A stretch of 64,000 bases of DNA from Macrostomum lignano (GCA_002269645.1 NIVC01001376.1:1-64000); one strand, 5' to 3'; shown: positions 9,111 to 33,219, counted from the stretch's first letter. Notes: generated from the sequence alone by a model not told the origin. A program made the numbers and translations.

Positions 9111-10821
9111 ATGATTTCGCAACTAATAATACTTTGTTTGCTATCCATCGGTAATATCCTAATCCATTTCGCAATTCACTTTGACCCAAATATCCCTGAA
9201 CTCCCAATTAATTAACTATAATTTCAGCCACCTGCGTGACTGCCAGCCAAGCTCCTGAGCAAGAGTACTACCTGGTCGATGAGCCCGTTACCATCAACGC
9301 CTCGGTGAGCAGCGAAGTGATCAATGTGACCGGGGTGGCTTCCGAGATCGACTGCGTGACGAGGTGCCTGTCGAGAGGCTGCTCGGTGGCGGTGGCTCAC
9401 GAGAGCATCGGGCTCTGCCAGATGGCGATGGTGTATGAAGGCGGCCACTCGTCCGGGAGTCGCGTGCAGAGGCTGCTGGGCTCGGAGGCCGGGGCCAGGG
9501 TCTGGACGTTCGACGCACCGCTAATTCACCTAAACTTCAGCATTGAGTTTCTCAGTAAGCACTTCTGCAACATTCCAAAGTTTCGTTAGATCTGCGAATA
9601 TTTATCTCTCAATGCTAAACTCCATCTTCCAGACTCCAGCACCGGTAGAAACGGCTCCATCCAGCAGCTGCTGATCGACACCACCCACTGCTACCGGATT
9701 GAAGCTGCCGGTGCCAGCGGGAGTCCCGGGGCTCGACAACCGAGCGGTCGAGGAGCAGTCATGGCAGGCAACTTCAGCCTGACTGCCGGCACCCTGCTGA
9801 CCATTGTTGTCGGACAGCAGGGCGGCCCCGCTAGCGATAAAGGCGGCGGAGGTGGCGGCGGAGGCAGCTTTGTGTACACTGTCAACGCCTCCGGCAACCC
9901 GCTGCTGCTGCTGGCTGCTGGCGGAGGCGGCGGTGGCTGCTACTATGAGGCTGGTAAGTGCCAGAGCAGGGTCTCGTCTGACTGCTGAATCACCTGTTTG
10001 AGATGAGAGCCCTCATGCGAACGCGAGCATTGGTTATCAAAGAAGAATGAAGCGGATTAAAAAAAATTAAAGAGATAATTAATAATTATTTTCTTGATTA
10101 GGACTCATTATTTGACATCATCAGGGTTGAATTATTTAACGAACGAGTGACTGAGCAAATTTAAAGTATGTACAGCTAGAGGAGAATGAGCAAAAGCAAT
10201 GACTGTGGCCCTAACCTTTGATTGATGGATTGGTTGATTGATTGATTGACTTATTGATTGATTGGTTATTTACAAGCTTACTACTTACTATTAGTAGTCA
10301 GTTATCAAAGTTAAAGCTCCTGTCGTGTTTCAAAATTCAGGTGCTGATGGCTCAGGAGACGAAAGAGGCACGAACTCAGTTGCTGGGGATTCTGATTACT
10401 CTGGCTACGGCGGCAGCAACGGTCAGGCCGGCTTCAGCAATTCTGATAATAATGACGAAGACTACTACCCCGGCGGCTGCGGCGCCGGCTGGTTTGGCAA
10501 GAATACCAACGCTAAAGCCACGCAGCACGACGGCGACCACGGTGGAAGCTTGGCTGACGGCTGGGTCGGCGGAGCCGTTAACACCAACTATAACGGCGGA
10601 ACCGGAGGGTTCGGAGGCGGCGGCGGTGGCGGCAGCACCCCACGAACGACAATGGCGGCGGCGGAGGCGGCGGCTTCAGCGGTGGCGGCGCCGCTGGCAA
10701 TCACGGTGGCGGAGGCGGCGGCTCCTTCTGCGGCGGCCGCGGCTGCGCCGCCACCAGCGGCGGCAACACCGGCAGCGACCAGGGCTTCGTCAAGGTGCAG
10801 TCGGTCCTGGATTGCGATTGA
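9111..10821 (+). CDS. Secreted PAN/apple + ALK/LTK-like glycine-rich-domain protein, copy 1 (exons 9111-9150, 9228-9554, 9633-9953, 10341-10821; 1-nt frameshift in exon 4)
   Basis: All introns are GT-AG and phase 1; internal exons are 327 and 321 nt. Signal peptide MISQLIILCLLSIATCVTA; PAN core [23 protein letters not shown]; GRD motifs [65 protein letters not shown] and GGFGGGGG. A frame break at the C4 run 10638-10641 is repaired by one added C, giving ...GFVKVQSVLDCD*. Confidence 0.85.
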
Positions 10822-10907
10822 ACAGTTTTGATGATAAAACAACTTTGGGTTGAGAATTCGAACGTTTTTGTCAATGTTATTTACCAGCCTAAGTAAGATT
10901 TCTAGTT

Positions 10908-11278
10908 AGTTAGAGGCAGGCGGTTGTGTGTAGCCTGGCGCACTTTAGGCGCGACATTGGCACACAACCGGCGAGAGCCATTACTGGCGCCCATTCCGCC
11001 GACTCCCCTGAGCAGGCACACAAGCCCGCGGATACGTACGCAGTCATACGCACAGGCACACACTCACACAGGAGTTTACAGCGGCCCTGACTTTATTTAT
11101 CGTTAGGCATGTACACTTCACTGTGCCTTGGGGGTTGGGCCTCAAAGACGTTAATTTCAGGAGCAGAGCCAAGCCGAGATTCCAATTCAGCCCCAAATTA
11201 ATGTGACTGCACTTGGAATCGAGCCTGGGCCGCTGGCACATCAGAGCGCCACGCTGGACCGCTGGGCTTCAGCCCCCT
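10908..11278 (-). mobile_element. tRNA-derived SINE (family B), near full length
   Basis: Minus strand: A-box-like gaagcccagcggt, B-box-like ggctcgattcc and a (CTAA)n tail. The 3' half matches 18643-18816 in the opposite orientation. Confidence 0.7.
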
Positions 11279-12605
11279 ACCCGTGACCTGACACAACAAT
11301 TCTATATAGCACATGCATACGGTTATTATTACTACTAGTACATTTTCTTCTTCGTAAACATCATGTACTTTCTGCTAGAAATTGCCTTCATAGTTGCTCC
11401 TGTTCTTTTTGCTTTTTTTGCTGTATTTTTCTTTCACAAAGTAAAAAAAGGTTTTTCAATCTGTGATATTTAATTTGGGCCCTTTGGGCCAGTAAGAAAC
11501 TTCTCTCGGACCTCCCCATGAGGGTGTAATTCGAATTTGTAATTTTGCTGTTACACCCTATCGCTCAGCGTGGTGATTACGTAATACTCGTAAATGCCCC
11601 GCAGTGTAAAGTGAAAGTTGTGCAACATGCAATTAGGGAGATTCAAGAGAAGTTGTTTACTGGCGCAAGTTTTAAATGTTGCCATTTCTCTAAGCTCTGC
11701 ATCATTAACAACCCGATATGTTCGATTTCGATCGCAGCTTGTGCACTATGCAGTTCTTTATAACAAATATACATTGCACAAAAGAATTTTAACACCTGAT
11801 TCTTATTGTTATTTGAAAATCGTTGTACACGCCGCAGAAGTGTTCCATTTTAATTATTTAAGCTAAAGTTAAATTTTTGCGGTTAACAATCTGCTCTGTC
11901 AAGTAATGTCGCCATACTGCCGAACATCGGTTAAGGAAGCAACTTCTTCGGTTCTAGGAAAGTCTGTTTCTTAAAAAACCTGTGCTTGAACAATGTGCTT
12001 AAAAAGCAGTACAGAAGTGTTTTGAGTGAGTATTGTCAGCTCAACTAAAAGGGTCTGAAAGTCAGCAGAAAATTGAAAGGGGAGGAGAGAAGCCTCCTAC
12101 CCTGCTGACGCTGAGCACCTGTCCTCCTGCCCCTCTCGTCCATTCAGTTGCCAAGTGCCTTTGTTGCCAAGGCGATCTTCTAAGTTATTAACCCAAACCG
12201 CCAAAAGAGGAGGAAGATGCTTCTAACTTCTCAACACCCAACAAGAGTTTCTACTCCTGATCATTGTTCTTTGCTCAGCAAGACTCGCCTGCCGCCTTAC
12301 TGGTCTTTGCTTTTGTTTTAAGAGTCTCCCAAATTCACTGGCAAAAACTGAGACAAAAGCTGAAAGCTGCCAGGGAAGCCTGACAGGATTGAGAGGCTGG
12401 CGTATTGATCGAAGGGTAAAAATAGCGATGAAGAGGTTGTTTACCTGCCTTCCTTGTGGTATACTTAGGCTATTTAGCAAAATTCTCTCACCACAGAAAT
12501 TGTGAGGCTCTCCTAATAAGCAGGGGTTCAAGTCTTTTTTCAAGGCGATACAAATCAAGACTAACCCTGATTTTATAATATTCAATCCTAGTTTTCTTTG
12601 CTGAA

Positions 12606-15600
12606 ATGATTTCGCAAATAGTACTACTTAGCCTGCTCTCCACCGGTAAGCTGCCTAATCCATTTCGCAATTCACTTTGACCCAAATATCCCTGAACTCC
12701 CAATTAATTAACTATAATTTCAGCCACCTGCGTGACTGCCAGCCAAGCTCCTGAGCAAGAGTACTACCTGGTCGATGAGCCCGTTACCATCAACGCCTCG
12801 GTGAGCAGCGAAGTGATCAATGTGACCGGGGTGGCTTCCGAGATCGACTGCGTGACGAGGTGCCTGTCGAGAGGCTGCTCGGTGGCGGTGGCTCACGAGA
12901 GCATCGGGCTCTGCCAGATGGCGATGGTGTATGAAGGCGGCCACTCGTCCGGTATTCGCGTGCAGAGGCTGCTGGGCTCGGAGGCCGGGGCCAGGGTCTG
13001 GACGTTCGACAAGATAAGCTCGGGACCTCGGGACAACAGGACTTTTATAAGTGAGCATTTATTTCTACTCTTTCACTTCGGCTTGTCTGGAAAGTCGAGA
13101 AAATGTGTGAAGCAAGCAAGAAAGAAGCAAGCTGTTGACGTGGTGGAAAAAGCTCAAGATCCTGACTTTATCGCCAGCCAAAGTAATAAAAGATCGTTGG
13201 CACAGTTCCCTAACAGCAGAAGTCGTAAATTTCAGACACCGGAACCGGCCGGACCGGCTCCATCCAGCAGCTGCTGATCAACTCCACCGGGTGCTACCGG
13301 ATCGAAGCTGCCGGTGCCAGCGGCGGCTCCAGCACAGCCAAATCAGGCGGTCGCGGAGCCGCCATGGCTGGCAACTTCAGCCTGACAGCCGGTATCCTGC
13401 TGACCATTGCTGTCGGACAGCAGGGCGGTGGATCGCTCAGCTGGGGCTACACAGGAGCTGGCGGAGGCGGGGGCAGCTTCGTGTACACATTTAACACGAC
13501 TGGTTTGCCAACACTGCTTCTGGCCGCCGGCGGTGGTGGAGGTGCCTGTTACACTACTAATGGTAATGATTTTAATGCGTGTTAATATACTCGAATAAGC
13601 CTCAGGGGTGGCATGCCAATGATCAAGGTGGAATGCTGAGGTACATGTAACAAAGCTTAAAGAGCTAATCTGGTATCTACACCTGATATCCTAGACTAGA
13701 ATTCTTGCTGAAAGGGGCTACTTTTCCTTCCTAATCCTAATCCTGGTAATTGTTGGTTTCACTTGAAAATTTGGACAAACATCTCAATGGGCCTGTCAAC
13801 TTAAGCTTATAAAGTGGCGCCCGAGTAACCTATGTACAAAAATGATACGTCATTCTGCTCACAATGACACTAGGAAGCTGGGTAGCTGGTTTTGGACACT
13901 AAGAGCAGAATGCCATATCATTTGAGTACATAGGTTACTGGGGCTCCACTTTATGAGCTTAAGTTGAGAGGCCCTTTATTTCAAGTAGTTTCACCAGAAC
14001 TGGTTTCAAGAATGTGAGCATGTGGTTTTTATTTTAACCTTTAGAAACTTCCGATTAATTAAGTACATGTATATTTTATCAGTGGGTGCAGATCAGAGTG
14101 TATGCATACACTTTCACTCATTGTATTACATACTCGTATAATATTACATAAAAATACATGCATCATGTTTTCGAAGCTGCAGGGGCGCTGTTACTAACTA
14201 CAAATTTTAAAGACCAGAATTTTCGACAACTCTAATTTCCACTTCGAAGAAAACTTGATGATGCACATTTATAAACTGCGAGCATATAGAGCTTTTCTAG
14301 TTTGCAGTTTACAGTTTTGTTGTTTGAATCTTAAAGATTATGGTTTGTAGCTAGTAGTTTGCAGTTGGTAGTTTGTAGATTGTTGTTTGCAGTTAGAAGT
14401 TTGCAGTTGGTAGTTTGTAGATTGTTGTTTGCAGTTAGAAGTTTGCAGTTGGTAGTTTGTCAGTTTGTTTGGAGTTTTTGGTTTGTAATTGGTACTTTGG
14501 TAGTTTGTAGTTGTTAGTTTGGAATTTGCAGTTTGTAGTTGGTGGATTGTAGTTGTTAATTTGTAGTTAGTAGTTTGCAGTTTGTATTTTGTAGTTTGTA
14601 GTTTTTAGCTTGTACGAAGTCTGTTTGTACATGTGGTAGCTAGTTTGTGAAGGTGCCTTCTTTCGATTTCGGTCTCATTTGATTTCTACGTTTTAAATTT
14701 GGTCTATGATCAATTGTTTCGATGATCAACACTTCGGAGTATGAGCTAGCAAATTCTTTGACAATTTAATTAAACCTGTCATCCCTTCCGAGCACTATGT
14801 GAGCTCCAATAAACAGTTTATTGAAAGCCTCAGCAACACCGCGATTAATCAAACTGACGGGCTTTATAGCTTTAATGTTGTTTCTCTTTTCACCAACATC
14901 CCTCTCGAATTCACCATTGAGCTGGCTGCTGATCTTGTGTATGAAAAGATCATCCACCTCCGTTCTCGAAAGCCACTTTTAAGAAGATGCTCATATTCGC
15001 CACCTCGGGCATCTTTCTTTTTTGGGACAAATATTACAGACAGATTGATGGTTGTGCCATGGGCAGCCCTCTTGCCCCAACCCTCGCTAAATTGTACATG
15101 GCCCATTGGGAAAAGGACTGGATGTCCCTCCCGTGTGCGCCTCGCTTCTACAAACGCTACGTGGATGACACGTTTGCGATCTTTGAGGATGAAACTAAGA
15201 AGAATGAATTTTTTAATGTGATAGAGGGGTATTTCGTTCTAGCTTGTTCCCACTGCTTAGTCACCAAATTTGTGGTAGGGCTATTTGGGTTATGGGCTTG
15301 TTTTAACGCTGACACCAAAGTAATAGGGATGTTGTCAATCCTAGAGATGCCACCAATTTGTGACGGGGTAAGTTCTGGGGGGGGGGAAGAGAGTATCTGA
15401 CTTATTAATTTCGGCTGCTGTTAACTTGGGTTCGGGGACTTGGGGATTTCTTGGATTTGGGGAACAGTATTCAAATTATACTACTTTAAGGAGTAAGCTT
15501 TAGAGAAACTCCTGGTAACGCGAGTGTTCGAGCGGCAAGACACTGTCTATTATTCTATATGCTAATATTAGTCCGAGGGAGGGCTGCACGGCGGACCAGA

Positions 15601-18600
15601 GTTGCCGGGGAAACGGGGCACTAATAGGGAATTTCAATGGCTAATATGCTGGCATAGAAGGTAAGGCACTTAATATGGGGGGTTTGAGTAGAGAGGCGGA
15701 ATGCCTATTAGAGGATTAGATAAGAAGGCAGGGCGCCTAATGAATGAAGGGGGGTTTAGGAATAGGCAGAACGCCTTAGAAGACAGAATGTCTGGGAAAG
15801 GAATGGGAAGAACGCTTTGGCAGACAGGACGTCTCGAAAGAATAGGCAGCACGCCTTGAAAGATAAAAAGGTCTGGAGAGGATAGGCAGAACGCTTGGGA
15901 TTGGACAGCTCGTCCTGGGGAAGGAAAGGCAGCAATGCTCCCCTATTGAAAAACACGTTCTAGTTATTGAAAGGCAAGACGCCTTTAAAGAAGGAAGACT
16001 GACTCACTGGCTATTTTTAGAACAGGCGCTCAATGGAGGCCAACTGGCAGCTTCAGCAAGCTTGCCAGGAACCAAGAGAGGAAAGGTTGGTCTTACTTCG
16101 CTGTTTATTTTTCATATATATAGTTTTTCTAGACAAAATGACGGACAAGTTTTGAAAAATCATAATAATTTTGGTGAGGCATTTGTGAATAATACGTCAA
16201 GTTGTTTAATAATGATTTGTCTAAAAGATTGATTAATTTGTTGCAAACAAGAATAGTTAAAAGGAAAAGAACAGAATCCGTGATTTACGTAAAAGATATA
16301 TTTCAGTACTAAAACAAGGCAAGGCATGCAAAAGATTATAGCTGTCTCATTAACATTTTTATCAATTCTACTCATGAGAATATCAAATTCACGGTGGAAG
16401 GTGGAAGCAGAAGACTTCCTTTCTTAGACATTGACGTTGATGCCACCAATGAAACTATTTCTACCAGCCGTGTTTAGGAAACCTAGTTTTACCGGGCTGA
16501 TGCTTAGATTCGATGCCCTGTGCCCTAGACAATGGAAGGTTGGATTGGTTCTTAGATTTGATGCCCTGTGCCCTAGACAATGGAAGGTTGGATTGGTTCT
16601 TAGATTTGATGCCCTGTGCCCTAGACAATGGAAGGTTGGATTGGTTCTTAGATTTGATGCCCTGTGCCCTAGACAATGGAAGGTTGGATTGGTTCTTAGA
16701 TTTGATGCCCTGTGCCCTAGACAATGGAAGGTTGGATTGGTTCTTAGATTCGATGCCCTGTGCCCTAGACAATGGAAGGTTGGATTGGTTCTTAGATTTG
16801 ATGCCCTGTGCCCTAGACAATGGAAGGTTGGATTGGTTCTTAGATTCGATGCCCTGTGCCCTAGACAATGGAAGGTTGGATTGGTTCTTAGATTTGATGC
16901 CCTGTGCCCTAGACAATGGAAGGTTGGATTGGTTCTTAGATTCGATGCCCTGTGCCCTAGACAATGGAAGGTTGGATTGGTTCTTAGATTTGATGCCCTG
17001 TGCCCTAGACAATGGAAGGTTGGATTGGTTCTTAGATTTGATGCCCTGTGCCCTAGACAATGGAAGGTTGGATTGGTTCTTAGATTTGATGCCCTGTGCC
17101 CTAGACAATGGAAGGTTGGATTGGTTCTTAGATTCGATGCCCTGTGCCCTAGACAATGGAAGGTTGGATTGGTTCTTAGATTTGATGCCCTGTGCCCTAG
17201 ACAATGGAAGGTTGGATTGGTTCTTAGATTTGATGCCCTGTGCCCTAGACAATGGAAGGTTGGATTGGTTCTTAGATTTGATGCCCTGTGCCCTAGACAA
17301 TGGAAGGTTGGATTGGTTCTTAGATTTGATGCCCTGTGCCCTAGACAATGGAAGGTTGGATTGGTTCTTAGATTTGATGCCCTGTGCCCTAGACAATGGA
17401 AGGTTGGATTGGTTCTTAGATTTGATGCCCTGTGCCCTAGACAATGGAAGGTTGGATTGGTTCTTAGATTTGATGCCCTGTGCCCTAGACAATGGAAGGT
17501 TGGATTGGTTCTTAGATTCGATGCCCTGTGCCCTAGACAATGGAAGGTTGGATTGGTTCTTAGATTTGATGCCCTGTGCCCTAGACAATGGAAGGTTGGA
17601 TTGGTTCTTAGATTTGATGCCCTGTGCCCTAGACAATGGAAGGTTGGATTGGTTCTTAGATTTGATGCCCTGTGCCCTAGACAATGGAAGGTTGGATTGG
17701 TTCTTAGATTCGATGCCCTGTGCCCTAGACAATGGAAGGTTGGATTGGTTCTTAGATTTGATGCCCTGTGCCCTAGACAATGGAAGGTTGGATTGGTTCT
17801 TAGATTTGATGCCCTGTGCCCTAGACAATGGAAGGTTGGATTGGTTCTTAGATTTGATGCCCTGTGCCCTAGACAATGGAAGGTTGGATTGGTTTTTAGA
17901 TTTGATGCCCTGTGCCCTAGACAATGGAAGGCTGGATTGGTTCTTAGATTTGATGCCCTGTGCCCTAGACAATGGAAGGTTGGATTGGTTCGCTGCTCTC
18001 TTCACCGGGCCTTTTCCATTTGCAGATCTTGGAGGCTTTTTCACAATGAAATTGAAATCCTCACCAATTTGCTCCGCTACAATGGCTACCCTAGGAACTT
18101 TGTGTTGAAAATAGTCAACTCTTTTCTCAATGACAAACTGACTGAACCCACTCAGATGAAAGTTCGTGAAACCACCTCTGATTGTCCCTTGATCACTTTA
18201 ACTTTCTTTGGTGTTCGCTCTATTGAGTTTAAAATAAAACTGAAAAGCTGCTCCGTAAAGACTTAAACGCTCAAATCCGTGTTGTGTTTCGCACTGAAAA
18301 GGTTGCTAAGTTTGTCTCTAGGCTGAAATCCAGTGTTCCTCGTCCTCTCGCGGCAGGTGTCATATATAAATTTATTTGCTCTGAGGATCAGAGCATCTCC
18401 TACATTGGAAAAACTAAACGACACCTGTACACGAGGGTCAGAGAGCACTGGCTAAAAAACTCTGCCATTAACGAACACCTGCTAACCTGCAACAGTTGTT
18501 GTGACGCTGACACACACGAGATGATTAAGGCTATTGACTTTTGCGATTAGAGATCACATGCTCTCGCCTCTGCCTATTAGAAGCCCTGTACATTAAAACG

Positions 18601-21600
18601 AGACAGCCCACGTTAAATACGAGTAACCAACTCGCGATGGGTAAAGTTAGGGCCGCAGTACACTCCTGTGTGAGTGTGTGCCTGCGTACGTATCCGCGCG
18701 CTTGTGTGCCTGCTCAGGGGAGTCGGCGGAATGGGCAGTAATGCCTCTCGCCGGTTGTGTGCCTATGTCGCTTAAAGTGCGCCAGGGTGCACACAGCCCC
18801 CTGCCTCTAATAAAAAAACTCGCGATGGGTGTGTAAGACTTCCTTTAGGCTTCGCCTATTCTTGACTAAGTTTGGTCTCTGTTTCCGTTCTGATCAATAT
18901 AGAGTTTCACTCGATCTTGAGCCTAAAAGATCTTGCAACAGAGATCGCAAGTTGTTGGCCAAGACTCGTGCCTGTAGCACAAATAACGAACAGTTGTCTT
19001 AGGATTTCCGTGAGTTGCACTGGAACTCTTGCTGTGGATTCTTCTCCGGGAAGCCTCATTTCGGGGCCGAGGCCGTGTCTATTTTAGAGAATTTTAGGTA
19101 CACGTCATCCCCCGCCGCTGATTAGCAACGGCGGGGTGCCAAAAACAGACGCAGTAACATTAGATTAGTGCGTTGCTACGGGGCGAGAGAGTTATTTGAT
19201 AACTGTTCGTTGGTCGCATCAGGCGATGGTTAAAGGTCAGTTCGGGGTTCATTATTCGAGCCGATTTGCACGTCAGACCACTCGTGCGTCCCTCGGTGAG
19301 TCGTGTCTTTTGCTCCCTGGGCCGATCCATGTACGTCACCGCTGACCCTGGCCTGTTGACCATTGCTCTGTCTCGCCCGCCAGTCGGGGTATCATGTCGT
19401 ATCGATTCTCCTGGCACCGCGCCGACTGACTCTGCCTGGTACCTCGGCCGATTTTGAAATCCCGTTTGGTCTGAAATCTTGGGGGAAAGTGACAATTAAG
19501 TTATTATCATATCTATGATTTATTTCGCTTTCTTGCCGTTCTTTTAATTTCTCTCACTTAAGTGTCTTATCTCTAAATTGAACTTTCGCCCCCTGGTTTT
19601 AGCTTCTTACTTTGCCCTTTAGCGAACCTTTTATTTTGTTCAGACTTTTCTTAATTTCTAATCCCTATAGGGTGGGGGATAGCCGTCAAATCAGCATATT
19701 TTAGTTGACCTTGCAAATAACCGGACTGGAACGAAATCGACGTACATTCTCCCCCTACCAATTGGTTCTATTTTCCATTAATATGTAAAAGTTTTCAAAC
19801 CATCAAAATTCAATAAAATTACATGTACTTTCATATTTTCTCTCTCCACTCACTATATATACTGTTTACTTGTCAAATCATTTGAGTTACTTACTTGACT
19901 TAGCTTCAGAGGGCTCCGTGCGTCCGGAAACAGCGAGGAGGCGTTGCCGCCCATTTCGCTAGCCCCTGGCGACCACGGGCAGCTAGTGCTGCGGTGTCGC
20001 GCAGGGAGTTCCGGTGGCGCCGGTGTCCGCAGCGCGGTGCCCCTCCGGAGAGTCCAGGAGGTGGATTGTCGCTCGCTCGGAAGCCCCTAGGTAGCGGACG
20101 AGCTGGCAGAGAATCTCGGGCCTGAAAACGTCGGGGAGGTCCGGGTTTGGGCCGAGGTAGGTGAGCCTGACGTGAGTAAAGGCGGGGCATTCAAAGATGA
20201 AGTGCTCCGCATTCTCGACACCGGAGAGGCAGAAAGGGCATTCCTCACTGCGGATTTTTCCCTGGAGGTAAAGATGCCTGGCAAAGCAGCCATGACCCGA
20301 GAGGGCCATGGTCACCGCCCTGATGTCCGTGCGGTTGAGTCCAAGCAGGGCCCTGCGCAGGGCGGAGGAAGGACAGGGGACAGCCGTGCGGGATTGCCGG
20401 CTGTCGGGGGCGTTAGCCCACCTCTCCCTGTGCTTAGAAGCCACCCACTGGTTGATCCGAGGGTGACAACGGCGATGGGGGTGGGGGCCACGGGCAGGGG
20501 ACCAGTGAATGAACCGGTCGAGCCAGCCTTGGCCAGGCGATCGGCCAGCTCGTTGCCGGGGTCACCCGAATGCCCGGGGATCCACTTTAGGGACACTTTG
20601 TTAGAGGCGCCTAAGCGGTTGAGCTGCCCGATGCAGTCGAGGACTGTACGCGAGCAGGTGGTGGTGCTCTCAAGGGCGTGAATCGCCGCTTGACTGTCCG
20701 AGTGGAGGGTAATTTCCTTCCCCCAGACGTGCTGATTGTACAGCTCCATGGCGCAGGAGCTGATGGCGAGAACTTTGTTCTGGAAGACGGTGGAGCAGGT
20801 GCCGGTGTGTTGGGAGAAGGTCGCCACAGTTCTCCCTCCAGACACGATGCAGTAGCCGTATCCAGAGGCGGAGTTGATTTGGGACCCGTCAGTGAAGCAG
20901 TGGATTTCATGGGGTTTCCAGTTGTCTCTCGCTTCATGGCGTGGTGGAATGCTGGTTTTGAATTTGAGCGGGGGGCAGAGCGTGGACGGGATTCCGTCCG
21001 AGAGGGTCAGCAGGCCTCTCGCTGCTTCCAGGTCTCGCAGGCTGAGGTCGCCATGCGGCCGGAGGTTCCGCTTTCTGAAGGCAAACTGCTTCTGGATTTG
21101 GACACCCGCGTCAAGCAGACGACGGGTGGTTTTCATAGCCTCCCCTCTAACAAAGAGGTCGAGGGGGGAATGTCCAAGAAGGAGTTCATGCCAGCGAAGG
21201 GCGTTGAGGGAGCCGCGCTCATGATAGCTCGACAAGCGCGGCCTTGCACCCTATTTAAAACCTCAAGAACCCCTTTCACCTCTAGGGCACTGTTCCAAAT
21301 GAGGCCGGCAAAGGAGATGGCCGGTCTAACAATGGCAGTGTAAATCCACCAGAGGCGGCGGGGGGTGAGGCCCCAGGTAGCACCGAAAGCTCTGCGGATC
21401 TGCGCGAGAGTCGCGTGAGCTTTGCGGACTTTGGTTTGGACGTGCGGGGTCCAGCTCAGCCTGTTGTCGAGAGTGACGCCCAGACATCTGGTTTGTTTCT
21501 CCATGGCAACAGGTTTGCCATTGAGGGAGAGCGGTTCGATCCTCCAGTTTCGGCGGCTGGTGAACATGATAGCCACGGTTTTAGACTCAGAGAACCTGAG

Positions 21601-24600
21601 ACCGCAGCTATGTGCCCAGCGCTCGGCACGGTGGATGAAGGCTTGAAGGAGGTCCCTGAGGACCGCGGGTGACGGTCCAGCCACAGTGGCGGTAACATCG
21701 TCCGCATAGCCGACCTTCTGAACTGGGTCCGGATGCGGGCTGCAAAGCAGCTCGTCCATGACTAAATTCCAGAGGATCGGGCTGAGGACTCCACCTTGCG
21801 GTCCGCCTTTCTGGACTTCCACGGAGCGTGAGTGTCCCAGGAGGTGCGAGGTGGAAGTACGATGGGAGACTATGTACATGATCCAGCGGGTGAGGTGCTC
21901 GTGCGTGCCCCGGGATTCCAGGGCTCCCCTAAAGGCTCCAAAGAGCACATTATTGAAAGCACCATCAATGTCGAGGAAAAGCGAGAGCGCGTATCCACTA
22001 CCAAGCACGGCGCGCTCCAGCTTGTCGACAATGGCGTGCAGCGCACTTTCGATGGAGCGTCCAGGACGAAAGGCGTGTTGATTGGGGGAGAGCGGGGAGT
22101 TCCTCAGCTCTACGAGGAGGAGGCGCCAGAGTACCAACCGTTCCATCAGTTTGAGGAAGAAAGATGTCAGACTGATGGGGCGGTAAGCTTTGACAGAGTG
22201 ATAGTCTCCCTTCCCTGGCTTGGGTATGAAGACCACCGTGGCCTCTTGCCAGGCTTTTGGCACGTACCCGAGGGTAATGCTGGCCTTGAAGAGGTTGCAG
22301 AGGAGACCAAGAAACCTGTAATTTTTAACTGCCTCATGGAGGAAGCCAGGATAAATGTTGTCAGGACCCGGAGACTTGAAAGGAGAGAAGGATTTTGCGG
22401 CGCGAGCCGTCCTCTCTAGTGATGATGGTCGAAGCCAGGATCTGTCCGCCGGAGAGTGGTCCGGTGGGCCTAGCTGCGGTGCGGCACGTGGGAAAGAGCT
22501 GGTGAGCATAATGTCCAGCGATTCCCCAGGGTTCTCAGCGAGCCGGCCGTCCGGTCTTTTAATGACTGAGAGCTTTGACATTTTGTCGAGGGTGAGGGCC
22601 TTAACTACGCGTGAAGTAAGGCGGGTGCCTTCTAACTCCGCGCAGTATTGGCGCCATTTGTCGGACTTGGCTTTCTTGGTTTCACGCTAAAAGTCGCGGA
22701 TCGCTTCTTGGTAGGCGGCCAGGTCAGCTGGGTCCTTGCTCTTGCGAGCTTTCCGCTGGAGGCACTTTGCCTTGCGCCGGAGGGATCCAAGCGCCGGGTG
22801 CCACCAGGTGCGGATTTTTTGCCTTTGTAGGCTTTAAGAGGACAGGAAGCCTCATGGGCTGTCAGGAAGGTCTTGCTGAGCAAGTCTGCAAGGTCATCCA
22901 CTTCCTGACAGGTGGTTGGAGTGACGGTAGACAGCTGATCTGTCTGGCATTTCAGGGTTTCCGTGAAAGCCGTCCAGTCAGTGTTCCGGATGTTCCTTTT
23001 CCACAGGATGTGAGGCTTGGGGCAAGAGGATTGCAATCGAAAACGAACGAAGCGATGGTCAGACAGAGACTCCTCTTCGTCCCACACCTCCCAGTCCTTG
23101 ACTAAAGGAGTCAAGCCATGAAAGACGAGGGTCACGTCGAGGGCCTCCGTCCATCGCCCGTTGTCAAAGGTGGGGGTTGCACCAATGTTGCAAAACTCAG
23201 TATTGGTGGTGCAGATGTAAGCAAGGAGTTCCTCGCCTCTGCTGCTGGAGGTATTACTGCCCCAGTGGGTGTGGTAAGCATTGACGTCGCCCGCCACCAG
23301 CAGCTCGAACCTACGGTTAGAGCAGTAGTCCACGAGGGAGATGAGGTTGGGTGGAACCGCGGGGCCATCGCCAGGGATATAGATCGAGCGATGATGACCG
23401 TTAGGTTGGTGATAATGTGGTTGGACTGAATGACACAGAGATCTCTGTCAGAGAGGTCCGGTCTGTGCCAAGCTTTGAGATGGGTAGACACGAACATGAC
23501 TGCTCTGGGGTTTTGGGGGTCTTGAAAACAGTCAAAACCAGCAGGAATATACAGAATCTTACTTTTCTTTGTCCAGGGCTCCTGGAGTAGGATAATGCCC
23601 GGTTTCACAAAGTTTGCCACCCGCATCAGGTTGGTCGAGGCCGCGATGCAATGGTGTAGGTTTAGCTGCAGGATGTCCACTCCGGGGAATCCACGAGTGG
23701 TCCGCGCAGCTTCCTGCCGGCTCAAGGCGAGTTGTGCAGGAGAGCCGCCTCTTCTGCCTCGCCGATATCACCAGGCTCCTGCTCCATGGGCTCCTCCCGG
23801 ATGGTCTCCTTGGTCGAGGGCGATGCCTCCACCTGGGCGGCATTCTCGCTCTCGGCCCGGTTTTCCGGGGGGGCGCAGTGGTGACACTGGGTTGGGGGTG
23901 GCTGCGGTTGTGGGCCTTGGCGGTGTCCAGCAGCTGCTTCGCGCGCTGAGTCAGACCAGAGCAGATAGTGTTCCGGGCGGGTTTCCGGCCCTTTCCACGT
24001 CCGCCTGTTGCTGCAGCTTTCGCGGCTTTCCCTCTGACAGGGTCCACGACCTCGGAGGGGTCGTGACGAACGGGAGCTTCTTTTCCTGGGCATTTCCGCC
24101 CGGCAGAGCCCCCGCTCGCCCGCTTACGTTTCTATGGGGGCGGTGGGCGGGTAGCGTCAGACTCAAAGCTAAAAAGCTGAATCTGCATCAGCCCGACAGG
24201 GATAAGGGACATGTCCGGGTAGCGGAGCATCCAGCTATCCGACAGTCCAAGAATAGCCGTGAAACCGTCTCCGCCTGGCTTGGAGATGGTCTCGTGAACT
24301 ACGACGCCATTAGCCGGTAGCTCCGGGTTGGTAGCCACTAGCAGGTGACGCAGCTCGTCGGCCTTGGTGATGCAGCTGCGAGCCGGGATCCAGGCACGGT
24401 GCCGGTGTGTCCGGGGTCGCTCGTCCTCCCTGTAGATAAACAGGTTTTCCAGCTCCGTACCCCAGTCGAAGGATTTTAGCACCTCGAGGAGCTGCTGTCC
24501 TGACTGGCTGTCGGCGGGCTGGATATGGATGGCTTGGTCCTCGACTTTCGTCTTTTGGACTGGAGTAGCGGTACCGCTCAAGGCCATCTTGACCAGGTGG

Positions 24601-26784
24601 GAGTCCAACCTGCGCCAGATAAGGTCGAGCTGTTCGGCCGTAAGAGGCGTCTCCTGGCCTTGAATAACCAGGGCCGGCTGCCTCTTGGCCATAGCCGCGT
24701 AGGTGCGCTTCGGCTTGGTGGTTTGGCCAGCACCCCCCGCTTTGGATCCCTCCACAGCCGTGGGAGCTTCCACACGGGCAGAGGTCCCGCCACGGGAGGG
24801 GCCAGCCGCACCAGGAGCTTCGGCGGCATCTGATGCATCTGACCGGCGCGCGGGGTCCACCCCCTTGTCGGATGTCGACTCCTCCGCGGGGTTCGCAGAG
24901 ATACCGGCACCCTCCTCGGAGGTGGCCGGAGGGGAGGCTTTCGCATTCCTCCGTTCCTCTGCTTTGCGCTGGAGAAAAGCTTTGTAGCGAGCAATGCTAC
25001 GGGCCTTCTTTTTTGAAATCTGAGGTCCGCTGTCCTGTTGTCCAGCCGCTCCGGCATTGTCCTGAGCGGCGGCAGGGGCTGACTGAGAGGCACCGGGGGT
25101 TCCGGTGTTGCGAATGTCCGGCTGGGCCGCGGTGCCAACCTCGGTTGGTGCTCCAGCAGCCTCGGACGTGATGGATGTAAGTGAATACTCCATGAGTCGC
25201 TGAAAGGCGAATGGGGACTAGAGGTGAGAAGCTGCTGGGCCGTAACCCCAAACCCACCAGCCAGGCCAAGAGGTAGCGACCGGGGGGTGGCTTAAGCCCG
25301 TACCGGCCCGACCGCTATCAACCGAGAAACTCCCCGGCTAAGAGCCCGGCTTGGAAAAACCAGAGGCCGAACCAAAGGACCATCAGCGCGGTACTACACT
25401 GGGCCCTTGAGGGAAGCAGGAGGACTGCCTCCGGAGCCTGCGGAGCCTGCGGACTGGCCGCATACCCTGTTAAGGTCAGAGGTTGATACCTGTTCCTCAG
25501 AGCCGTGGCCAGAGGTACCTGACACGCACAGGTTCACTTCCGGGCGGAGCCCGTACCCAACTTGGCCAACAGGCCACGGATGGGTTGCCGTCGCCGGAGC
25601 CCAGTCAGTCCAGCAGCCCTAGAGCTGCCTTGAACACATGCGGGGCGTGAACCCCTGGGTCGGTTTGCGAGTCAGCTTGGAGAGAGTTCTCCTGCCATTC
25701 CTGCACCAGAATAGAGGGGGTGCAGGTGTGTAGGATCGCAGACCTTAGCTCGTAGGCCTGGTCTGTCTCATGCTATACAGGCGTGCTGAACCCACCTTGC
25801 ATGCTGCTAAATCATTTGGTTTTCAAATAAATTTCGACCCTGAAGATGTCCAATAGTTGGACGAAATGCATCGGAATTTCAAATAAATATAACTAACACT
25901 TCATGTTGATATTGAATTTAATTATCTATACTCTATTAAGCGAGCCACTTTACCTGATTTCTAGTCTGTGAAATTTCTAGTCCCTTGCTGCATAGTTAAA
26001 TCTAATTTCACAAGCTTGTTGTTACAATTAAACCATAGGCTCAAAATCACTGATAAAAAACAAGCAAAATTCTATACAGCCTTGAGACTTGAATAAGCCG
26101 TATATCTCCTACAATTATGGAATATTGATGAAGAATTTGTTAATTGTACCAACGGTATCTTCATCGAAAAGATTTCTAGCTCGATACTACAACTAATAAG
26201 TTATTTTTATCGATCCTTGTCGGTCTCTAGCACTGCATTTCTATGAAAAATCCTTCCTTCTGCTTCAGCTGTCCATGACTCTACTACTCTCCATGTTTGA
26301 TATTTCAGGCGCCGCCGGTTCTGGAGGAACATCCGGTACGGCTTCGATACCCGGTGACACTCCATACTACGGCTACGGAGGAGCGAATGGCCAGCCCGGA
26401 TCCAACAACCCCGCTGGAAGGAAAACAGGCTCTTACGTCGGTGGCTGCGGCGCCGGGTGGCTGGGAAAGGCAGCAAACCCACCAAGTAACATGTACGATG
26501 GAGGTCGAGGCGGCAGTCTGGCTGATGGCTGGATTTGTGACAGCGCTGGGACTGCTGGCGGCTTCGGTGGCGGAGGCGGAGGAGCTAATTACCCGGTGAC
26601 GAGTCTCAACGCCGGTGGCGGTGGCGGTGGCTACAGCGGCGGCGGTGCCGGCGTCGCTGGCAATCACGGCGGCGGAGGCGGCGGCTCCTTCTGTGGCGGC
26701 AGCGGCTGCGCCGCCACCAGCGGCGGCAACACTGGCAGCGACCAGGGCTTCGTCAAGGTGTGGCCGATTGATCAATGCAATTAG
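12606..26784 (+). CDS. Secreted PAN/apple + ALK/LTK-like glycine-rich-domain protein, copy 2 (exons 12606-12645, 12724-13050, 13236-13562, 26309-26784)
   Basis: Same 4-exon phase-1 architecture. Signal [19 protein letters not shown]. Exon 3 ends ACYTTNG|gtaat and no exon 4 follows nearby. The orphan exon after tatttcag at 26309 (GAAGSGG...[12 protein letters not shown]) is in the right phase and orientation. No stops or frameshifts in the joined CDS. The 12.7-kb join is inferred. Confidence 0.78.
13789..13974. mobile_element. MITE with ~72-bp imperfect terminal inverted repeats (GGGCC ends, PIF/Harbinger-like)
   Basis: gggcctgtcaacttaagcttataaagtgg...cattctgctc is mirrored by gagcagaatg...agcttaagttgagaggccc with about 8 mismatches. 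No clear TSD. Confidence 0.7.
14335..14625. repeat. Low-complexity GT-rich tandem repeat (tagtttgcagttgg-type modules)
   Basis: Repeated agtttgcagttggtagtttgtagattgttgtttgc units and degenerate variants. Confidence 0.75.
15217..16349. mobile_element. Solo LTR (1133 bp) inserted in the Penelope RT
   Basis: Starts TGTGATAG and ends CTGTCTCA (TG...CA with imperfect terminal IR). Flanked by TTAA at 15213-15216 and 16350-16353. Removing it restores the RT frame ([18 protein letters not shown]). Confidence 0.75.
16503..17990 (+). repeat. 48-bp tandem array, 31 near-identical copies, derived from Penelope RT coding sequence
   Basis: Unit cttagatt(t/c)gatgccctgtgccctagacaatggaaggttggattggtt encodes [16 protein letters not shown]. 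1488/48 = 31. Flanked in frame by [10 protein letters not shown] and RCSLHRAF. Confidence 0.95.
18643..18816 (+). mobile_element. 5'-truncated SINE family B copy with A-rich tail and 14-bp TSD
   Basis: TSD aactcgcgatgggt at 18629-18642 and 18817-18830, tail ctctaataaaaa. Matches the 3' half of 10908-11278. Confidence 0.85.
19983..23725 (-). pseudogene. LINE ORF2: AP endonuclease, reverse transcriptase, RNase H, CCHC finger (frameshifted)
   Basis: [32 protein letters not shown]; RT motifs [59 protein letters not shown]; RNase [31 protein letters not shown]; SGHG...CPFC...AEHFIFEC. Confidence 0.92.
23722..25193 (-). pseudogene. LINE ORF1 (gag-like, DUF4780-like segment), frameshifted near the C-terminus
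   Basis: 353-aa ORF 24132..25193 has a low-complexity N-terminus and [13 protein letters not shown]...GLMQIQLF, which resembles LOA ORF1 proteins. It continues in other frames to ~23722. Confidence 0.6.
25838..25876 (+). ncRNA. Minimal type I hammerhead-ribozyme-like motif (degenerate stem I)
   Basis: cc-CTGAAGA-t-gtccaa(tag)ttggac-GAAA-tgca-TC-gg: core CUGANGA/GAAA/UH with a 6-bp stem II and a palindromic short stem III. Stem I is only ~2 bp. Confidence 0.4.
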
Positions 26785-27970: not shown

Positions 27971-27979
27971 ACGCGATGC

Positions 27980-29435
27980 AACCTGCTCTAGAATGAGATA
28001 GAGCTGATAGACACGATACAACCTCAACCTGGTTAGACACGATGGAACCTGTTAGACACAATGCAACCTGTTAGACACAATGCAACCTATTAGACAATGC
28101 GATTCCTATTAGACACAATGCAACCTGTTAGACACAATGCAACCTATTAGACACAATGCAATTCCTATTAGACACAATGCAACCTATTAGACACAATGCA
28201 ACCTATTAAGGCCCGCCCTTCGCATCGGCCGAGTTCAGCAGCTTCCTGGCGGATCAGGGCGCCCGGCACCATCGAATCACGCCTCTACCCTCAGGCTAAC
28301 GGCGCAACGGAGCGGTGCAACCAGGGGCTGAACAAGGCCATTCGCGCGGCGGTCCTCGAAGTTCGGGACTGGACGCTGGCCTTGGACGAATACCTGAGTA
28401 CCTGGCAGCGTACAGGCGCACTCCACACTGCGCCACAGGCGTCGCACCGGCTAGTCTGCTATTTGGCAGGCAAATCAACAATGTAATCCCGAGCCTCCAA
28501 CACTCGCAGCCCATCGACGCGACAAGAGCGGCCATCGCCGACCGCGACCGCCAGGCCAAAGAGGAGATGAAGCGGCTCACCGACCGACGCTCCAGGGCAG
28601 CAGAGCACGCCATCCGTCCAAGCGACCGCGTTCTGAGGCGTCTGCAATCCCGGCAGAAGACCGACTCCTTCTACGAGCCAGTGCCATGGACCGTGGCCGA
28701 GGTCCAGGGACCGTGGACTCCCTGCTCATGCAGCGTGACGACTTCGTCTGCCGCAGGCATGCCACGCAGGTCAAGCGGCTGTCCGAGCAGCCTAAGTAGT
28801 CCGATGAGCAGCCGCTCCAGCCGCCTGGCCTCCCTGAGCCCATGGAGCCAATCGCCGCCCGGCCGTATCCCCGGCAAGCAGAGGACCCGGAGAGGAACTA
28901 CAAAGAACCTGACCTGCGCAGAAGCTGATCGACTCTTAAATGGACTGCACATGCACGAACTGTTAGTCACTTTTTATGGTTCCCTTTGTGTTTCCCCCGT
29001 TACTTTTAATCCATTCGAGGAGGAATGTAATGCCACTCTGGCCAGTGCTAGCTTGTAAATTGTATTAGCAAGTACATGTTGCTACTCAAATTATGTACGT
29101 AAGGCACGCGGCTCTTGTGCACGTTGCAATCGGATCGCTTCCAAATATATAAATATTGTCCCACCCTACTAGGAGGGTTAAGGCCTTTTTCTCGCACGCC
29201 ACAAACACAGCTGACTCCAGAGTCATTACAGACACAATGCGACCTAGACACAATGCGACCTAGACACAATGCGACCTAGACACAATGCGACCTAGACACA
29301 ATGCGACCTAGACACAATAGAACCTGTTAGACACAATGTAACCTGTTAGACACAATACAACATGTTAGACACAATGCAACCTGTTAGACACAATGCAACC
29401 TGTTAGACACAATGCAACCTGTTAGACACGATGCG
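27980..29435. repeat. 19-bp minisatellite (tgttagacacaatgcaacc) in two blocks, 27980-28208 and 29231-29435
   Basis: Tandem units on both sides of the Gypsy fragment. A 16-bp variant (tagacacaatgcgacc) adjoins the LTR. Confidence 0.9.
28209..29230 (+). mobile_element. Ty3/Gypsy retrotransposon 3' fragment: integrase core, PPT and 3' LTR
   Basis: PFASAEFSSFL...HHRITPLYPQANGATERCNQGL, YRRTPHCATGVAPASLLFGR and SDRVL. PPT gaggaggaa at 29017-29025. LTR 29026-29230 is bounded by TGTAATG...CATTACA. Confidence 0.88.
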
Positions 29436-30372
29436 ATAGATTTTTTGGAGCAGTCGTGGCAGTTAGGTACGATGGCTGACAACCAGGAAAGGGGACCTCA
29501 AGCAGCTCAAGGAAGGAACTGGAGTAGCCTCCTCTTGGCGGGTCATGATACAAACTAAGATCCTGCTTGCTTCTAGCTATCAATATTTGCTTCTAATAGC
29601 TACTGCTGTACAGAATAAAATACCGTATATTTGTTAAAAATCGTCGAATATTCTAGATAAAAACTTTTAAAAAGCTCGTATACGCCAAGCACTAAGCCAA
29701 AATCAAACTTTCTTCACTGACTAACCAAACATCTAAAAGCCTTACGGATTATGAAATCCATCATCCTCCTCTCTACACAGCTAATTTATTTCGTACCCTA
29801 CTAAGTTTTCAGTTGCTCCCACTCAGATAGATTTTCGAAGATAACAGATGAATCGACTTGTTTAATATTTTTTACAGTGTTTCTGAAGTAAATATTAAAA
29901 ATTAAAAGAAAAGTTTTAAATTTTATTAGAAAACAATTATTGGAAATAAGACGCGAAACAGGAATAAAAACAAAGAATAGAAAACTGAAATTTATGTTGT
30001 GACTGAGTTCTAGGACAGGTTTCCGCACAAAGATTGATTATAAATAAACATTTTTAATTCGCAAATAGCACTACAGAAATATTCGCGTTTATAATTGCGT
30101 AAATTGATCTTTTGAAAACACAATTTCAGAAAAAGAAAAGAGAATAAAAATTTAAAATAAACACAAATATTTGCAATCAACAAATTTAGTGAAACGAGTG
30201 CTACAGTACATGAATAGATTGATGGATAGTCCGAATTTAATAGGCAGGTCATACATTGTGAAAGTAAGAAAGTTCTCGAATGCCTAAACTCTTGCCAATT
30301 AATTTTGCAAACTGAAATTGGTCTCTGCTGAAAATCTTCTACTGAATCGACGAAAATTAAGTCGTAAAATTT

Positions 30373-33219
30373 TCAGCCACAAGTCGGAATCGACTGCACC
30401 TTGACGAAGCCCTGATCGCTGCCGGTGTTGCCACCGCTGGTGGCAGCGCAGCCGCTGCCGCCGCAGAAGGAGCCGCCGCCTCCGCCACCGTGGTCGCCAG
30501 CAGTGCCAGCGCCGCCGCCGCTGTAGCCGCCGCCGCCGCCTCCGCTATTATCATCTTTTAAATCTTTGCCCCCACCGCCTCCACCGCCGCCGAAGCCGCC
30601 AGCACCGGCGCCGCCTTCATCGGCTGGGGCGCCGCCCAACCAGCCGTCCGCAAAGCTGCCGCCCCGGTCTCCATCAGTCGTTAAGTTTCTGGCGTTGACA
30701 GCCTTGCCCAGCCAGCCGGCTCCGCAGCCTCCAATAGCATCGTCGTCTTTCCTCATAGAGGGATTGTTGGACCCGGGCTGACCATTCGCTCCGCCGTAGC
30801 CGAAGTACGACTCGGCCCCGCCAAACGAATTCGTCCCGTTCACTTGAGCTGCCCCGTCAGCTCCTGTAGGCAACAATTACATTTGCACTTGCAAAACATT
30901 TTTACAACCGAACTGAAAATTAATTTTACTGAGTCTGTTATATAAAGACCAGGCTAGTGAAAAGCACAACAACCTGTAACCGTACAAAGATGACTTTATC
31001 TCTATGCGTTTGCTTAAGTTTGCTATCTTCATTTAAACGTTTTTTGAAGATCTATCGAAGTTAGTACTATCGGTAAGATCGAACCAGAATCCGACTATTC
31101 AAACATCCTGGACAACTGAGGCCATGCAGTTCTGGCTCCAAAATTAATTACCACTTTGTGGCAATATTTTAAATTCAACATTTAACCCGCTTAAAGTCTT
31201 GATGATTTTACCGTCTTTTCTGTGGCAGCCACCGCCGCCTCCGCCAGCAGCTAGCAGCAGCAGCGGGTTGCCTGAGGCGTTGACAGTGTACACGAAGCTG
31301 CCTCCGCCGCCACCTCCGCCGCCTTTATCGCTAGCGGGGCCGCCCTGCTGTCCGACAACAATGGTCAGCAGGGTGCCTGCAGTCAGGCTGAAGTTGCCTG
31401 CCATGACTGCTCCGCGACCGCTCGGTTTTCCGGTTCCAGGACTCCCGCTGGCACCAGCAGCTTCAATCCGGTAGCAGTGGGTGGTGTCGATCAGCAGCTG
31501 CTGGATGGTGCCGTTTCTACCGGTGCTGGAGTCTGGAAGATGGAGTTTAGCAGCATCCGTAAGCTATAGCCTGACTTGAGCAGGTCAAAGGTTTCATGGA
31601 AAAAGTTTTGCTAAACGAGCGATGAAAGCTGTCAATGTACCATGTTCCTATCATTGCAGTTGTCTAACAACTAACTCGTACTTTGGCGCCCCTTGGTGCT
31701 GGCGCCCCTTGGTGCTGGCGCCCCTTTGTGCTGGCGCCCCTTGGTGCTGGCGCCCCTTGGTGCTAAACCCCTTTGGTGCTAAAGCCCAGGGGCGTAGCCA
31801 GGAATTTTGATGGGGGGGGGGCGTGAGTTAGAGGGCGCCTGCTTCTTATAGGGGGGCGCCAGTTTCTTTTAGGGGGGCGCCAGTTTCTTTTAGGGGGGGG
31901 CGCCAGTTTCTTATAGGGGGGGGGGGCGCCAGTTTCTTTTAGGGGGGGGCACCAGTTTCTTTTAGGAGGGGCCGGGGCACCAGTTTCTTTTAGGAGGGGC
32001 CGGGGGCACCAGTTTCTTTTAGGGGGGGGGGCGCCAGTTTCTTATAGGGGGGGCGCCAATTTCTTTTAGGAGGGGCCGGGGCACCAGTTTCTTTTAGGGG
32101 GGGGGCGCCAGTTTCTTATAGGGGGGGGCGCCAGTTTCTTTTAGGAGGGGGGCGCCAGTTTCTTTTAGGGGGGGGCGCCAGTTTCTTTTAGGGGGGGGCG
32201 CCAGTTTCTTTTAGGGGGGGGCGCCAGTTTCTTATAGGGAGGGGGGCGCCAGTTTCTTTTAGGGGGGGGGGCGCCAAGGCCAGAGTTGGTGATTGGGGGT
32301 GGCACGGCCCCCCTTGCCCCCCTCTGGCTACGCCCCTGCTAAAGCCCCCTGGTGCTAAAGCCCCCTGGTGCTAAAACCCCCTGGTGCTAAAGCCCCTTAG
32401 TACTAAAGCCCCTTGGTGCTGGCGCCTTTAGTAGAACCCAAAAGTAGCACCCAAACACGGTGCCCACAAGATGGTCGCTGCATGTCGCTAAATGCTAATG
32501 CCCAATAAAAAATCCTTTGCAGTTTTTAGGAAAAAGTGAGTGACTATAGAGTCCAATGTAATATTTCTAGATCCTAAAGAAGCTTTGAACACAGAAATTT
32601 AGAAAGATAGTATCATTATTATTTTTTAGTTTTTTTCACTGAAGACTAGAATTTTTTCAATTTCAATTTCTATTAAATGCTCGTTTAAAGATTAACAAAG
32701 ACGCTTACTGAAAAACTCTCTGCTGAAGTTCAGGTTAACCATTGCCGATGTGGTTGGCGGGTCTGCTGTTGTTGATGTTATTTCGGGCGGCGAAGTAGTT
32801 ACCGTTGTTGTAGTTGTTGCTTGTTGGGTATCGAACGTCCACACCTTGGCCCCGGCCTCCGAGCCCAGCAGTCTCTGCACGCGACTCCCGGCCGAGTGAC
32901 CTTCGTACACCATGGCCATCTGGCAGAGCCCGATGCTCTCGTGAGCCACCGCCACTGAGCAGCCCTCCGCGTGGCACTTAGCCGCGCAGTCAATGCTGGA
33001 GGTGATGCCAGTGACATTGAAAACCTCGCTACTCACCGAGTTGTCAATGACAAACGGCCCGGCTACCAGTTTGAAGAATTTGCTTTGTGTCGAATTGCAT
33101 GTTGCTGGAAAAGTTTTCAACTATGAATAAAGTAACGTGCTTAAAATTTTAAGCGATTATTAATTCGAGAGATACCTACCGAAAATTAGACAAAAAGCGA
33201 AGGCTCTTGGCAAAATCAT
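30373..33219 (-). CDS. Secreted PAN/apple + Thr-rich linker + ALK/LTK-like glycine-rich-domain protein, copy 3 (exons 33219-33180, 33104-32709, 31532-31212, 30863-30373)
   Basis: Intact frame with phase-1 GT-AG introns; exon lengths 40, 396, 321 and 491 nt. Signal MILPRAFAFCLIFATC; [26 protein letters not shown]; linker QATTTTTVTTSPPEITSTT; same GRD motifs; ends GFVKVQSIPTCG*. Confidence 0.88.
31787..32338. mobile_element. hAT-type MITE carrying a G-rich tandem repeat, in intron 2 of copy 3
   Basis: Perfect 15-bp TIRs caggggcgtagccag / ctggctacgcccctg and 8-bp direct repeat ctaaagcc at 31779-31786 and 32339-32346. Interior is ~21-25-bp ggggggcgccagtttcttttag units. The host site is itself a short tandem repeat. 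Confidence 0.75.

Follow-up and report, generated by a model that had tools for sequence, protein, structure and literature searches.

The window analysed here, a stretch of 64,000 nucleotides from the flatworm Macrostomum lignano (GCA_002269645.1, NIVC01001376.1:1-64000), carries between positions 9111 and 33219 three paralogous four-exon genes, G1 (9111-10821, plus strand), G2 (12606-26784, plus strand), and G3 (33219-30373, minus strand), with G1 and G2 in tandem and G3 convergent (Table 1). Each gene consists of a 40-nt exon 1 coding for Met and a hydrophobic stretch, one exon for an N-terminal domain, and two exons for a glycine-rich domain (GRD) of the ALK/LTK type, and all nine introns are bounded by GT..AG and are in phase 1. 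The resulting proteins of about 390-415 amino acids (aa) are built in the order leader, divergent PAN/apple domain, short linker, which is Thr/Pro-rich in G3, complete TNF-like/glycine-rich (TG/GRD) domain, and stop. Searches with the spliced products by tblastn reveal no fourth copy of the family in the window. Assigning the exon at 26309 to a separate, fourth gene was considered and rejected, because no other family exons occur in 13563-26308 and its phase and acceptor fit G2. Pairwise ratios of non-synonymous to synonymous divergence (dN/dS) among the paralogues amount to 0.34-0.40, with 0.34 for G2 versus G3, and the exons are therefore regarded as constrained coding sequences and not as chance open reading frames (ORFs).

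A preliminary description of this DNA had proposed three paralogues with a common 40-nt signal-peptide exon, a PAN exon, two GRD exons, and phase-1 introns, each stopping right after the GRD, and had pointed out that the ORF track displays only fragments of them. The gene models, rescued by splicing, agree with most of this proposal: 9111 and 33219 are the exact ATGs of G1 and G3, and exon order and intron phase hold for all three models at nine of nine junctions. Exon 1 is alike in length and phase in the three genes, but that of G3 has no detectable DNA similarity to exon 1 of G1 or G2. The stop right behind the last conserved GRD strand is found in G2 (389 aa, C-terminus IDQCN) and in G3 (415 aa, C-terminus IPTCG), whereas the terminus expected for G1, DCD and stop at 10810-10821, appears only in another frame. 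The spliced coding sequence of G1 comprises 1169 nt, which is not divisible by 3, and one base is absent beside A10634, where GGC-AG-CAC is read in place of the GGC AAG CAC predicted from GGC AAA in G3. As assembled, G1 runs into an Ala-rich tail with a stop at 10829-10831. This single-base frameshift sits in a G/C-rich run and, unless it is an indel of the assembly, makes G1 a pseudogene. Intact copies are thus G2 and G3, and only G3 is both compact and intact. ATTAAA/AATAAA signals occur 132-583 nt downstream of exon 4 of G3, and the 800 nt following G1 and those following G2 contain neither AATAAA nor ATTAAA.

Table 1. Exons, one long intron, and near-identical tracts of the three PAN-GRD paralogues (positions counted from the first nucleotide of the window).
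Feature	Position	Strand	Remarks
G1 exon 1	9111-9150	+	40 nt; MISQLIILCLLSI-, signal-peptide start; donor G/GTAATA, phase 1
G1 exon 2	9228-9554	+	signal-peptide end and divergent PAN/apple domain; 96% DNA identity to G2 exon 2
G1 exon 3	9633-9953	+	first GRD half (TNF-like strands, first Gly motifs); 95% DNA identity to G3 exon 3
G1 exon 4	10341-10821	+	second GRD half, frameshifted by 1 nt beside 10634
G2 exon 1	12606-12645	+	40 nt
G2 exon 2	12724-13050	+	PAN/apple domain; modelled, core pLDDT >90
G2 exon 3	13236-13562	+	first GRD half
G2 intron 3	13563-26308	+	12,746 bp
G2 exon 4	26309-26784	+	second GRD half, ends IDQCN and stop
G3 exon 1	33180-33219	-	40 nt; MILPRAFAFCLIF-
G3 exon 2	32709-33104	-	PAN/apple domain and Thr/Pro-rich mucin-like linker of about 30 residues
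G3 exon 3	31212-31532	-	first GRD half
G3 exon 4	30373-30863	-	second GRD half, ends IPTCG and stop
Tract 1, gene conversion or recent duplication (exon 1, intron 1, most of exon 2)	G1 9098-9514 vs G2 12593-13010	+	96.4% identity
Tract 2 (exon 3 and 20 nt of intron)	G1 9613-9943 vs G3 31552-31222	+ vs -	95.8% identity

The C-terminal 260 residues, about one third of which are glycine, form a complete ALK/LTK-type TG/GRD domain, as had been claimed. With the Pfam profile PF12810 (ALK_LTK_GRD), the check suggested at the time, G2 reaches 28.4 bits at a gathering cutoff of 24.5 and is above threshold. A profile built from G2, G3, and 45 homologues detects human ALK (2.3e-13), SCD-2 of Caenorhabditis elegans (1.8e-10), and LTK (3.3e-10) in the PDB, with alignments that cover the TG domain completely, beginning at its first TNF-like strand and ending at its last strand; with G3 as a single sequence, phmmer against the PDB gives a marginal result (E about 0.2). 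For the fold, the model of the closest complete homologue was used, M. lignano A0A1I8HRN4 (P0002), which is 41% identical to G3 and whose GRD is mostly modelled at pLDDT 85-95. Its first 21 matches in the PDB are all TG domains of ALK, LTK, or SCD-2 (best E 4.6e-11, TMt about 0.6), beyond which only weak matches to phage tail tips follow. Among predicted viral structures, the same model matches 103 proteins at E<=1e-3, mostly phage virion or tail-fibre proteins and glycine-rich proteins of giant viruses, in line with the similarity between SCD-2 and the tip of the Pam3 tail fibre that has been published (PMC9608196). In the second GRD exon, the ratio of the proportions of non-synonymous and synonymous differences (pN/pS) is 0.03-0.2 in the glycine scaffolds versus about 0.5 in the loops, and the loops carry indels.

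Judged from its sequence and its modelled structure, the N-terminal domain is a divergent PAN/apple domain. Three independent lines lead to this placement: the alignment of a cysteine core, AlphaFold and Foldseek matches, and a relative found with HMMER that passes PAN_1. The core, C-x3-C-x4-C-x11-C, is invariant in the three window copies, in five M. lignano proteins, and in six cnidarian PAN_1 domains; of the cysteines of the apple fold the flatworm domain retains only the four inner ones. An AlphaFold (AF2) model of the translated exon 2 of G2 has a mean pLDDT of 74 and shows one helix on a sheet, and its first ~38 Foldseek matches in the PDB are all of PAN type (36 PAN/apple chains and 2 related WSC chains), with probabilities of 0.63-1.0 overall and at least 0.9 for the top 33. 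The N domain of HGF, the PAN domain of plasminogen, the PAN domain of a Colletotrichum copper oxidase, and WSC lead these matches, with SML-2, AMA1, and MIC4 at lower ranks. When only the PAN exon was used in a word-indexed search for homologues, there were no matches, and an exhaustive HMMER profile search with the three window N-domains found 15 relatives, several of which run on into a GRD. One of them, P0144 (E=8e-9), scores 22.6 bits against PAN_1 (threshold 21.4) over the part that was matched, which a GRD follows, and this match supports the window domain transitively only; another, P0148, combines PAN_1, WSC, and fibrinogen-C domains. The earlier assignment to PAN therefore holds by cysteine core, modelled fold, and a relative passing PAN_1, but not by a direct match to PF00024. 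Fold and core disulfide pattern are common to the window domain and to the HGF N domain, plasminogen PAp, Sarcocystis SML-2, and Toxoplasma MIC4, although the window domain is too divergent for PAN_1.

G2 and G3 begin with a hydrophobic leader (KD11 2.3-2.4) followed by a putative cleavage motif with small residues at -3/-1 (VTA/SQ in G2), and their homologues start with comparable leaders. After the leader, 6-9 N-glycosylation sequons and 10 conserved Cys are present, and both products are predicted to be secreted, N-glycosylated, and disulfide-bonded. Neither a transmembrane helix nor an EGF module follows the GRD, and the proteins end 15-20 residues past the last Gly motif. Kinase signatures (HRDLAARN, DFG, GxGxxG, and others) are absent from all six frames of the window, and a kinase motif occurs in 0 of 152 homologues, whose median length is 310 aa. 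The sole internal hydrophobic peak (KD 1.65-1.67) corresponds to the GRD beta-strand LLTIVVGQQG; since this strand is conserved and aligns with ALK, its interpretation as a transmembrane helix was rejected, as was a read-on into downstream transmembrane or kinase exons, given a window without kinase motifs. The view that the proteins lack transmembrane and kinase regions and are soluble, ALK-ectodomain-like molecules fused to PAN is therefore upheld at the level of prediction. The ectodomains of ALK, LTK, and SCD-2 (PDB 7n00, 7nx0, 7lir), with their TNF-like beta-sandwich and polyglycine-II (PGII) lattice, are homologous over the full domain, although the GRD of the flatworm homologue model is only about 22-26% identical to that of ALK in structural alignment. 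In contrast to these receptors, the window proteins possess no EGF-like module, transmembrane helix, kinase, MAM, or LDLa, and a PAN domain stands in front instead.

The two tracts of about 96% identity listed in Table 1 have sharp edges and make G1 a mosaic of G2 in its 5' part and of G3 in exon 3. Other exon comparisons between the copies give 77-81% DNA identity, and synonymous divergence is 0.016 and 0.137 in the two tracts versus about 0.45-0.55 elsewhere. Because synonymous divergence has collapsed in these tracts, their sequences indicate that gene conversion or recombination transfers stretches between the paralogues, one block of exons at a time. Recent conversion is indicated also for a pair of genes in opposite orientation, G1 and G3, which are 21 kb apart.

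Relatives of the window genes are found in M. lignano itself and in cnidarians. The best homologues of G3 are about 14 M. lignano proteins, 34-53% identical, among the best 120 matches; several have the order leader-PAN-GRD and several are named "Apple domain-containing protein" in UniProt. A0A1I8HRN4, A0A1I8GD17 (one of those so named), and A0A1I8GEH1 resemble the window genes in consisting of leader, PAN-like domain, NSSTGRNGSIQ, GRD, and a C-terminal Cys, are 39-42% identical to G3 over 77-78% of its length, and probably form one lineage-expanded family with them. They differ in being other paralogues (about 40% identity) and automatic predictions only, some of them fused to unrelated genes; one public M. 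lignano model, P0142 (2348 aa), joins PAN and GRD to IFT140. Cnidarian proteins with PAN_1 and ALK_LTK_GRD, kinase-less like the window genes, are predicted in Porites (KAM7432210), Stylophora (PFX14163), Pocillopora (XP_058960210), Nematostella (XP_048583957, "loricrin-like"), and Rhopilema. Their PAN domain is above the Pfam threshold, in contrast to that of the window, and their GRD is 35-42% identical. In several of them, PAN and GRD are separated by EGF domains or by an additional small exon or module. A single exon codes for the GRD of the Porites gene, while a phase-1 intron divides the GRD of the flatworm genes; the Porites gene has no tandem partner within 10 kb, whereas the window genes are clustered. 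Automatic names of the cnidarian relatives include "loricrin-like", "lysozyme-like", and "receptor protein-tyrosine kinase". Proteins with a GRD only are often auto-named "receptor protein-tyrosine kinase", "PE-PGRS", or "loricrin-like", which amounts to a systematic misannotation.

At greater distance, the glycine-rich tips of the phage tail-fibre adhesins Pam3 gp24 and S16 gp38, and other viral GRD proteins, share the TNF-like/PGII fold, which serves them for binding at the terminus, and phage and viral tips bear variable loops on conserved glycine motifs (PMC9608196), like the window GRD. The viral proteins differ in forming trimeric fibres and in lacking PAN, and the similarity is structural and remote. 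In the literature, no functional study of secreted PAN-GRD proteins or of stand-alone animal GRD proteins was found, and the one paper that mentions PF12810 states that no function is known. The preliminary description was thus right that the architecture has no functional description; it is not unseen, having already been predicted in M. lignano and cnidarians, but it is uncharacterized everywhere.

Intron 3 of G2 harbors a Penelope-like retroelement remnant (14799-18550, plus strand) with a reverse transcriptase (RT) fragment at 14987-15400 and a GIY-YIG domain at 18284-18550, between which a tandem array of 31 units of 48 bp (16503-17991, 98% matches) is open in several frames. The same intron contains a near full-length long interspersed nuclear element (LINE; 20312-25193, minus strand) with an ORF1-like region (24132-25193), RT (21133-22581), RNase H (20312-21235), and an EEP endonuclease recognized by Pfam (22632-23333) within an ORF extending to about 23725; a tail fragment of a related LINE lies at about 6236-7724 on the minus strand. 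Intron 2 of G3 has 1176 bp versus 78-185 bp in G1 and G2, and this length is mostly due to about 18 tandem copies of a 23-bp unit (GGGCGCCAGTTTCTTTTAGGGGG, 31833-32276) and short GGGGCTTTAGCACCAAGG-type repeats on both sides of them. Two 19-bp arrays with a common unit (containing AGACACAATGCAACCT) lie at 28033-28208 and 29230-29434, in the region where the 3' ends of G2 and G3 converge. The ORFs that they flank (28196-29058) were judged integrase-like on inspection; Pfam gave no match for 28196-28486, the only ORF scanned there, and 28033-29434 may be a transposon with terminal arrays. Farther away, the AT skew of the window has its strongest excursion at a 2-kb AT-rich satellite (40000-42013, 23-bp unit, about 90 copies), and two adjacent 20-bp arrays at 51727-52046 and 52082-52850, whose units CCCTGGCTTCCCTCCCCTGA and AAGCCAGGGTCAGGGGAGGG are reverse complements, form a large inverted satellite that accounts for the GC-skew jump at 52-54 kb. 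A putatively coding ORF of 283 aa (62778-63629, minus strand) contains a 27-bp repeat (about 7 copies of a 9-aa SSAGAAAMP-like unit) and has no Pfam match. On the other side of the cluster, a gene similar to M1 aminopeptidase N (2396-5300, minus strand; Peptidase_M1/ERAP1_C by homologue annotation) has long exons, an N-terminal signal-like ORF at 4773-5300, and 88-98% identity to Macrostomum sequences, which places the window in M. lignano or a near relative of it.

We favor, with a probability of roughly 0.7, the reading that these genes encode soluble two-module binding proteins of a lineage-expanded, gene-converting family that function in recognition, agglutination, or matrix cross-linking. 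By analogy, the proteins would act extracellularly as soluble bivalent binders. The PAN module might bind carbohydrate or protein with one face, as HGF-N and the apicomplexan PAN lectins do, and the GRD might offer a second face, as in phage fibre tips and in ligand binding by ALK. The conserved polyglycine strands would serve as a rigid scaffold, and the faster-evolving loops between them would vary among paralogues. Such proteins may have a role at the animal surface or in secretions, in surface, mucus, or immune-type functions, and not in signalling.

Several points weigh against this reading. Binding is proposed by analogy, and no transcript or protein identical to G1, G2, or G3 was present in the collections searched. 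The signal peptides were judged only by eye and hydropathy. PAN_1 (PF00024) and PAN_4 of Pfam match neither the full proteins nor the isolated N-domains, even at E<=10, and the Foldseek scores of the PAN model are modest (E 6e-3, template-modelling score about 0.5). G3 alone stays below the PF12810 threshold with 12.1 bits, which is attributed to compositional bias, and support for the GRD fold comes from sequence profiles and from the model of a 41%-identical homologue, not of a window protein. The pN/pS of the loops is below 1, and diversifying selection is thus not demonstrated. Finally, part of the cluster may be decaying, since one copy is broken and another is laden with transposons.

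That the whole cluster is non-functional, consisting of pseudogenes or untranscribed relics of duplication and transposon activity, is hardly to be expected. The G1 frameshift, the 12.7-kb transposon-filled intron of G2, the missing AATAAA/ATTAAA downstream of G1 and G2, and the lack of a matching transcript or protein in public collections would fit such decay, but in G2 and G3 the reading frames are complete, the splice sites are canonical, and none of the conserved Cys and Gly motifs is missing; their dN/dS is 0.34 and the scaffold pN/pS goes down to 0.03, and the frameshift of G1, which concerns one base within a G/C-rich run, might have arisen in the assembly. A purely mechanical function, as a glycine-rich component of matrix, mucus, eggshell, or adhesive, is somewhat less far-fetched yet still unlikely. 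It is suggested by the glycine content of the C-terminal 260 residues, the mucin-like Thr/Pro linker, which is peculiar to G3 among the three copies, the name "loricrin-like" given automatically to cnidarian relatives, and the occurrence of PAN domains in cuticle and apical matrix proteins (PMC4970718). However, in the modelled homologue the glycine runs belong to a compact globular domain as ordered PGII strands (pLDDT mostly 85-95) and are not low-complexity repeats, the proteins are small with single-copy domains and neither repeats nor cross-linking motifs, and the "loricrin" names are artefacts of composition.

Regulation by soluble decoys of receptor ectodomains is established, and the preliminary description had considered decoy receptors. 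A soluble GRD would then trap a flatworm ALK ligand (Jeb-, HEN-1-, or ALKAL-like) and dampen ALK signalling. In favor of this speaks the homology, over the full length of the domain, to the TG domain with which ALK, LTK, and SCD-2 bind their ligands. This suggestion found no support and we consider it very improbable: the nearest 152 relatives are all kinase-less with a median of 310 aa, many of them being cnidarian, the fold abounds in structural proteins of phages and giant viruses, the identity to ALK is low, and neither an ALK gene nor a ligand gene is seen in the window. Moreover, the lineage-specific expansion, the variable loops, and the fusions to PAN, EGF, WSC, and fibrinogen domains suit general binders better. 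The abundance of the fold in viruses and the kinase-less relatives therefore argue for a branch that is not derived from an ALK gene. The family of soluble two-module binders preferred here may represent an independent, ancient, non-receptor branch of GRD proteins and not a truncated ALK. More speculative, and doubtful at present, is the idea that the PAN-GRD paralogues constitute a soluble, diversifying recognition repertoire, in which a rigid PGII scaffold would present paralogue-specific loops and the PAN and GRD halves would be shuffled by gene conversion, as an animal counterpart of phage tips. If this were true, the ligand-binding domain of ALK and LTK would have been recruited from ancient secreted binders, and not the reverse.

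The GRD is usually treated as a peculiarity of one receptor family. The flatworm and cnidarian genes, together with more than 100 viral matches, suggest instead a widespread extracellular binding module, of which kinase-less secreted forms may be the common state in some invertebrates. As Macrostomum is amenable to RNA interference, in situ hybridization, and transgenesis, its compact PAN-GRD family might allow one to learn what a free GRD binds.

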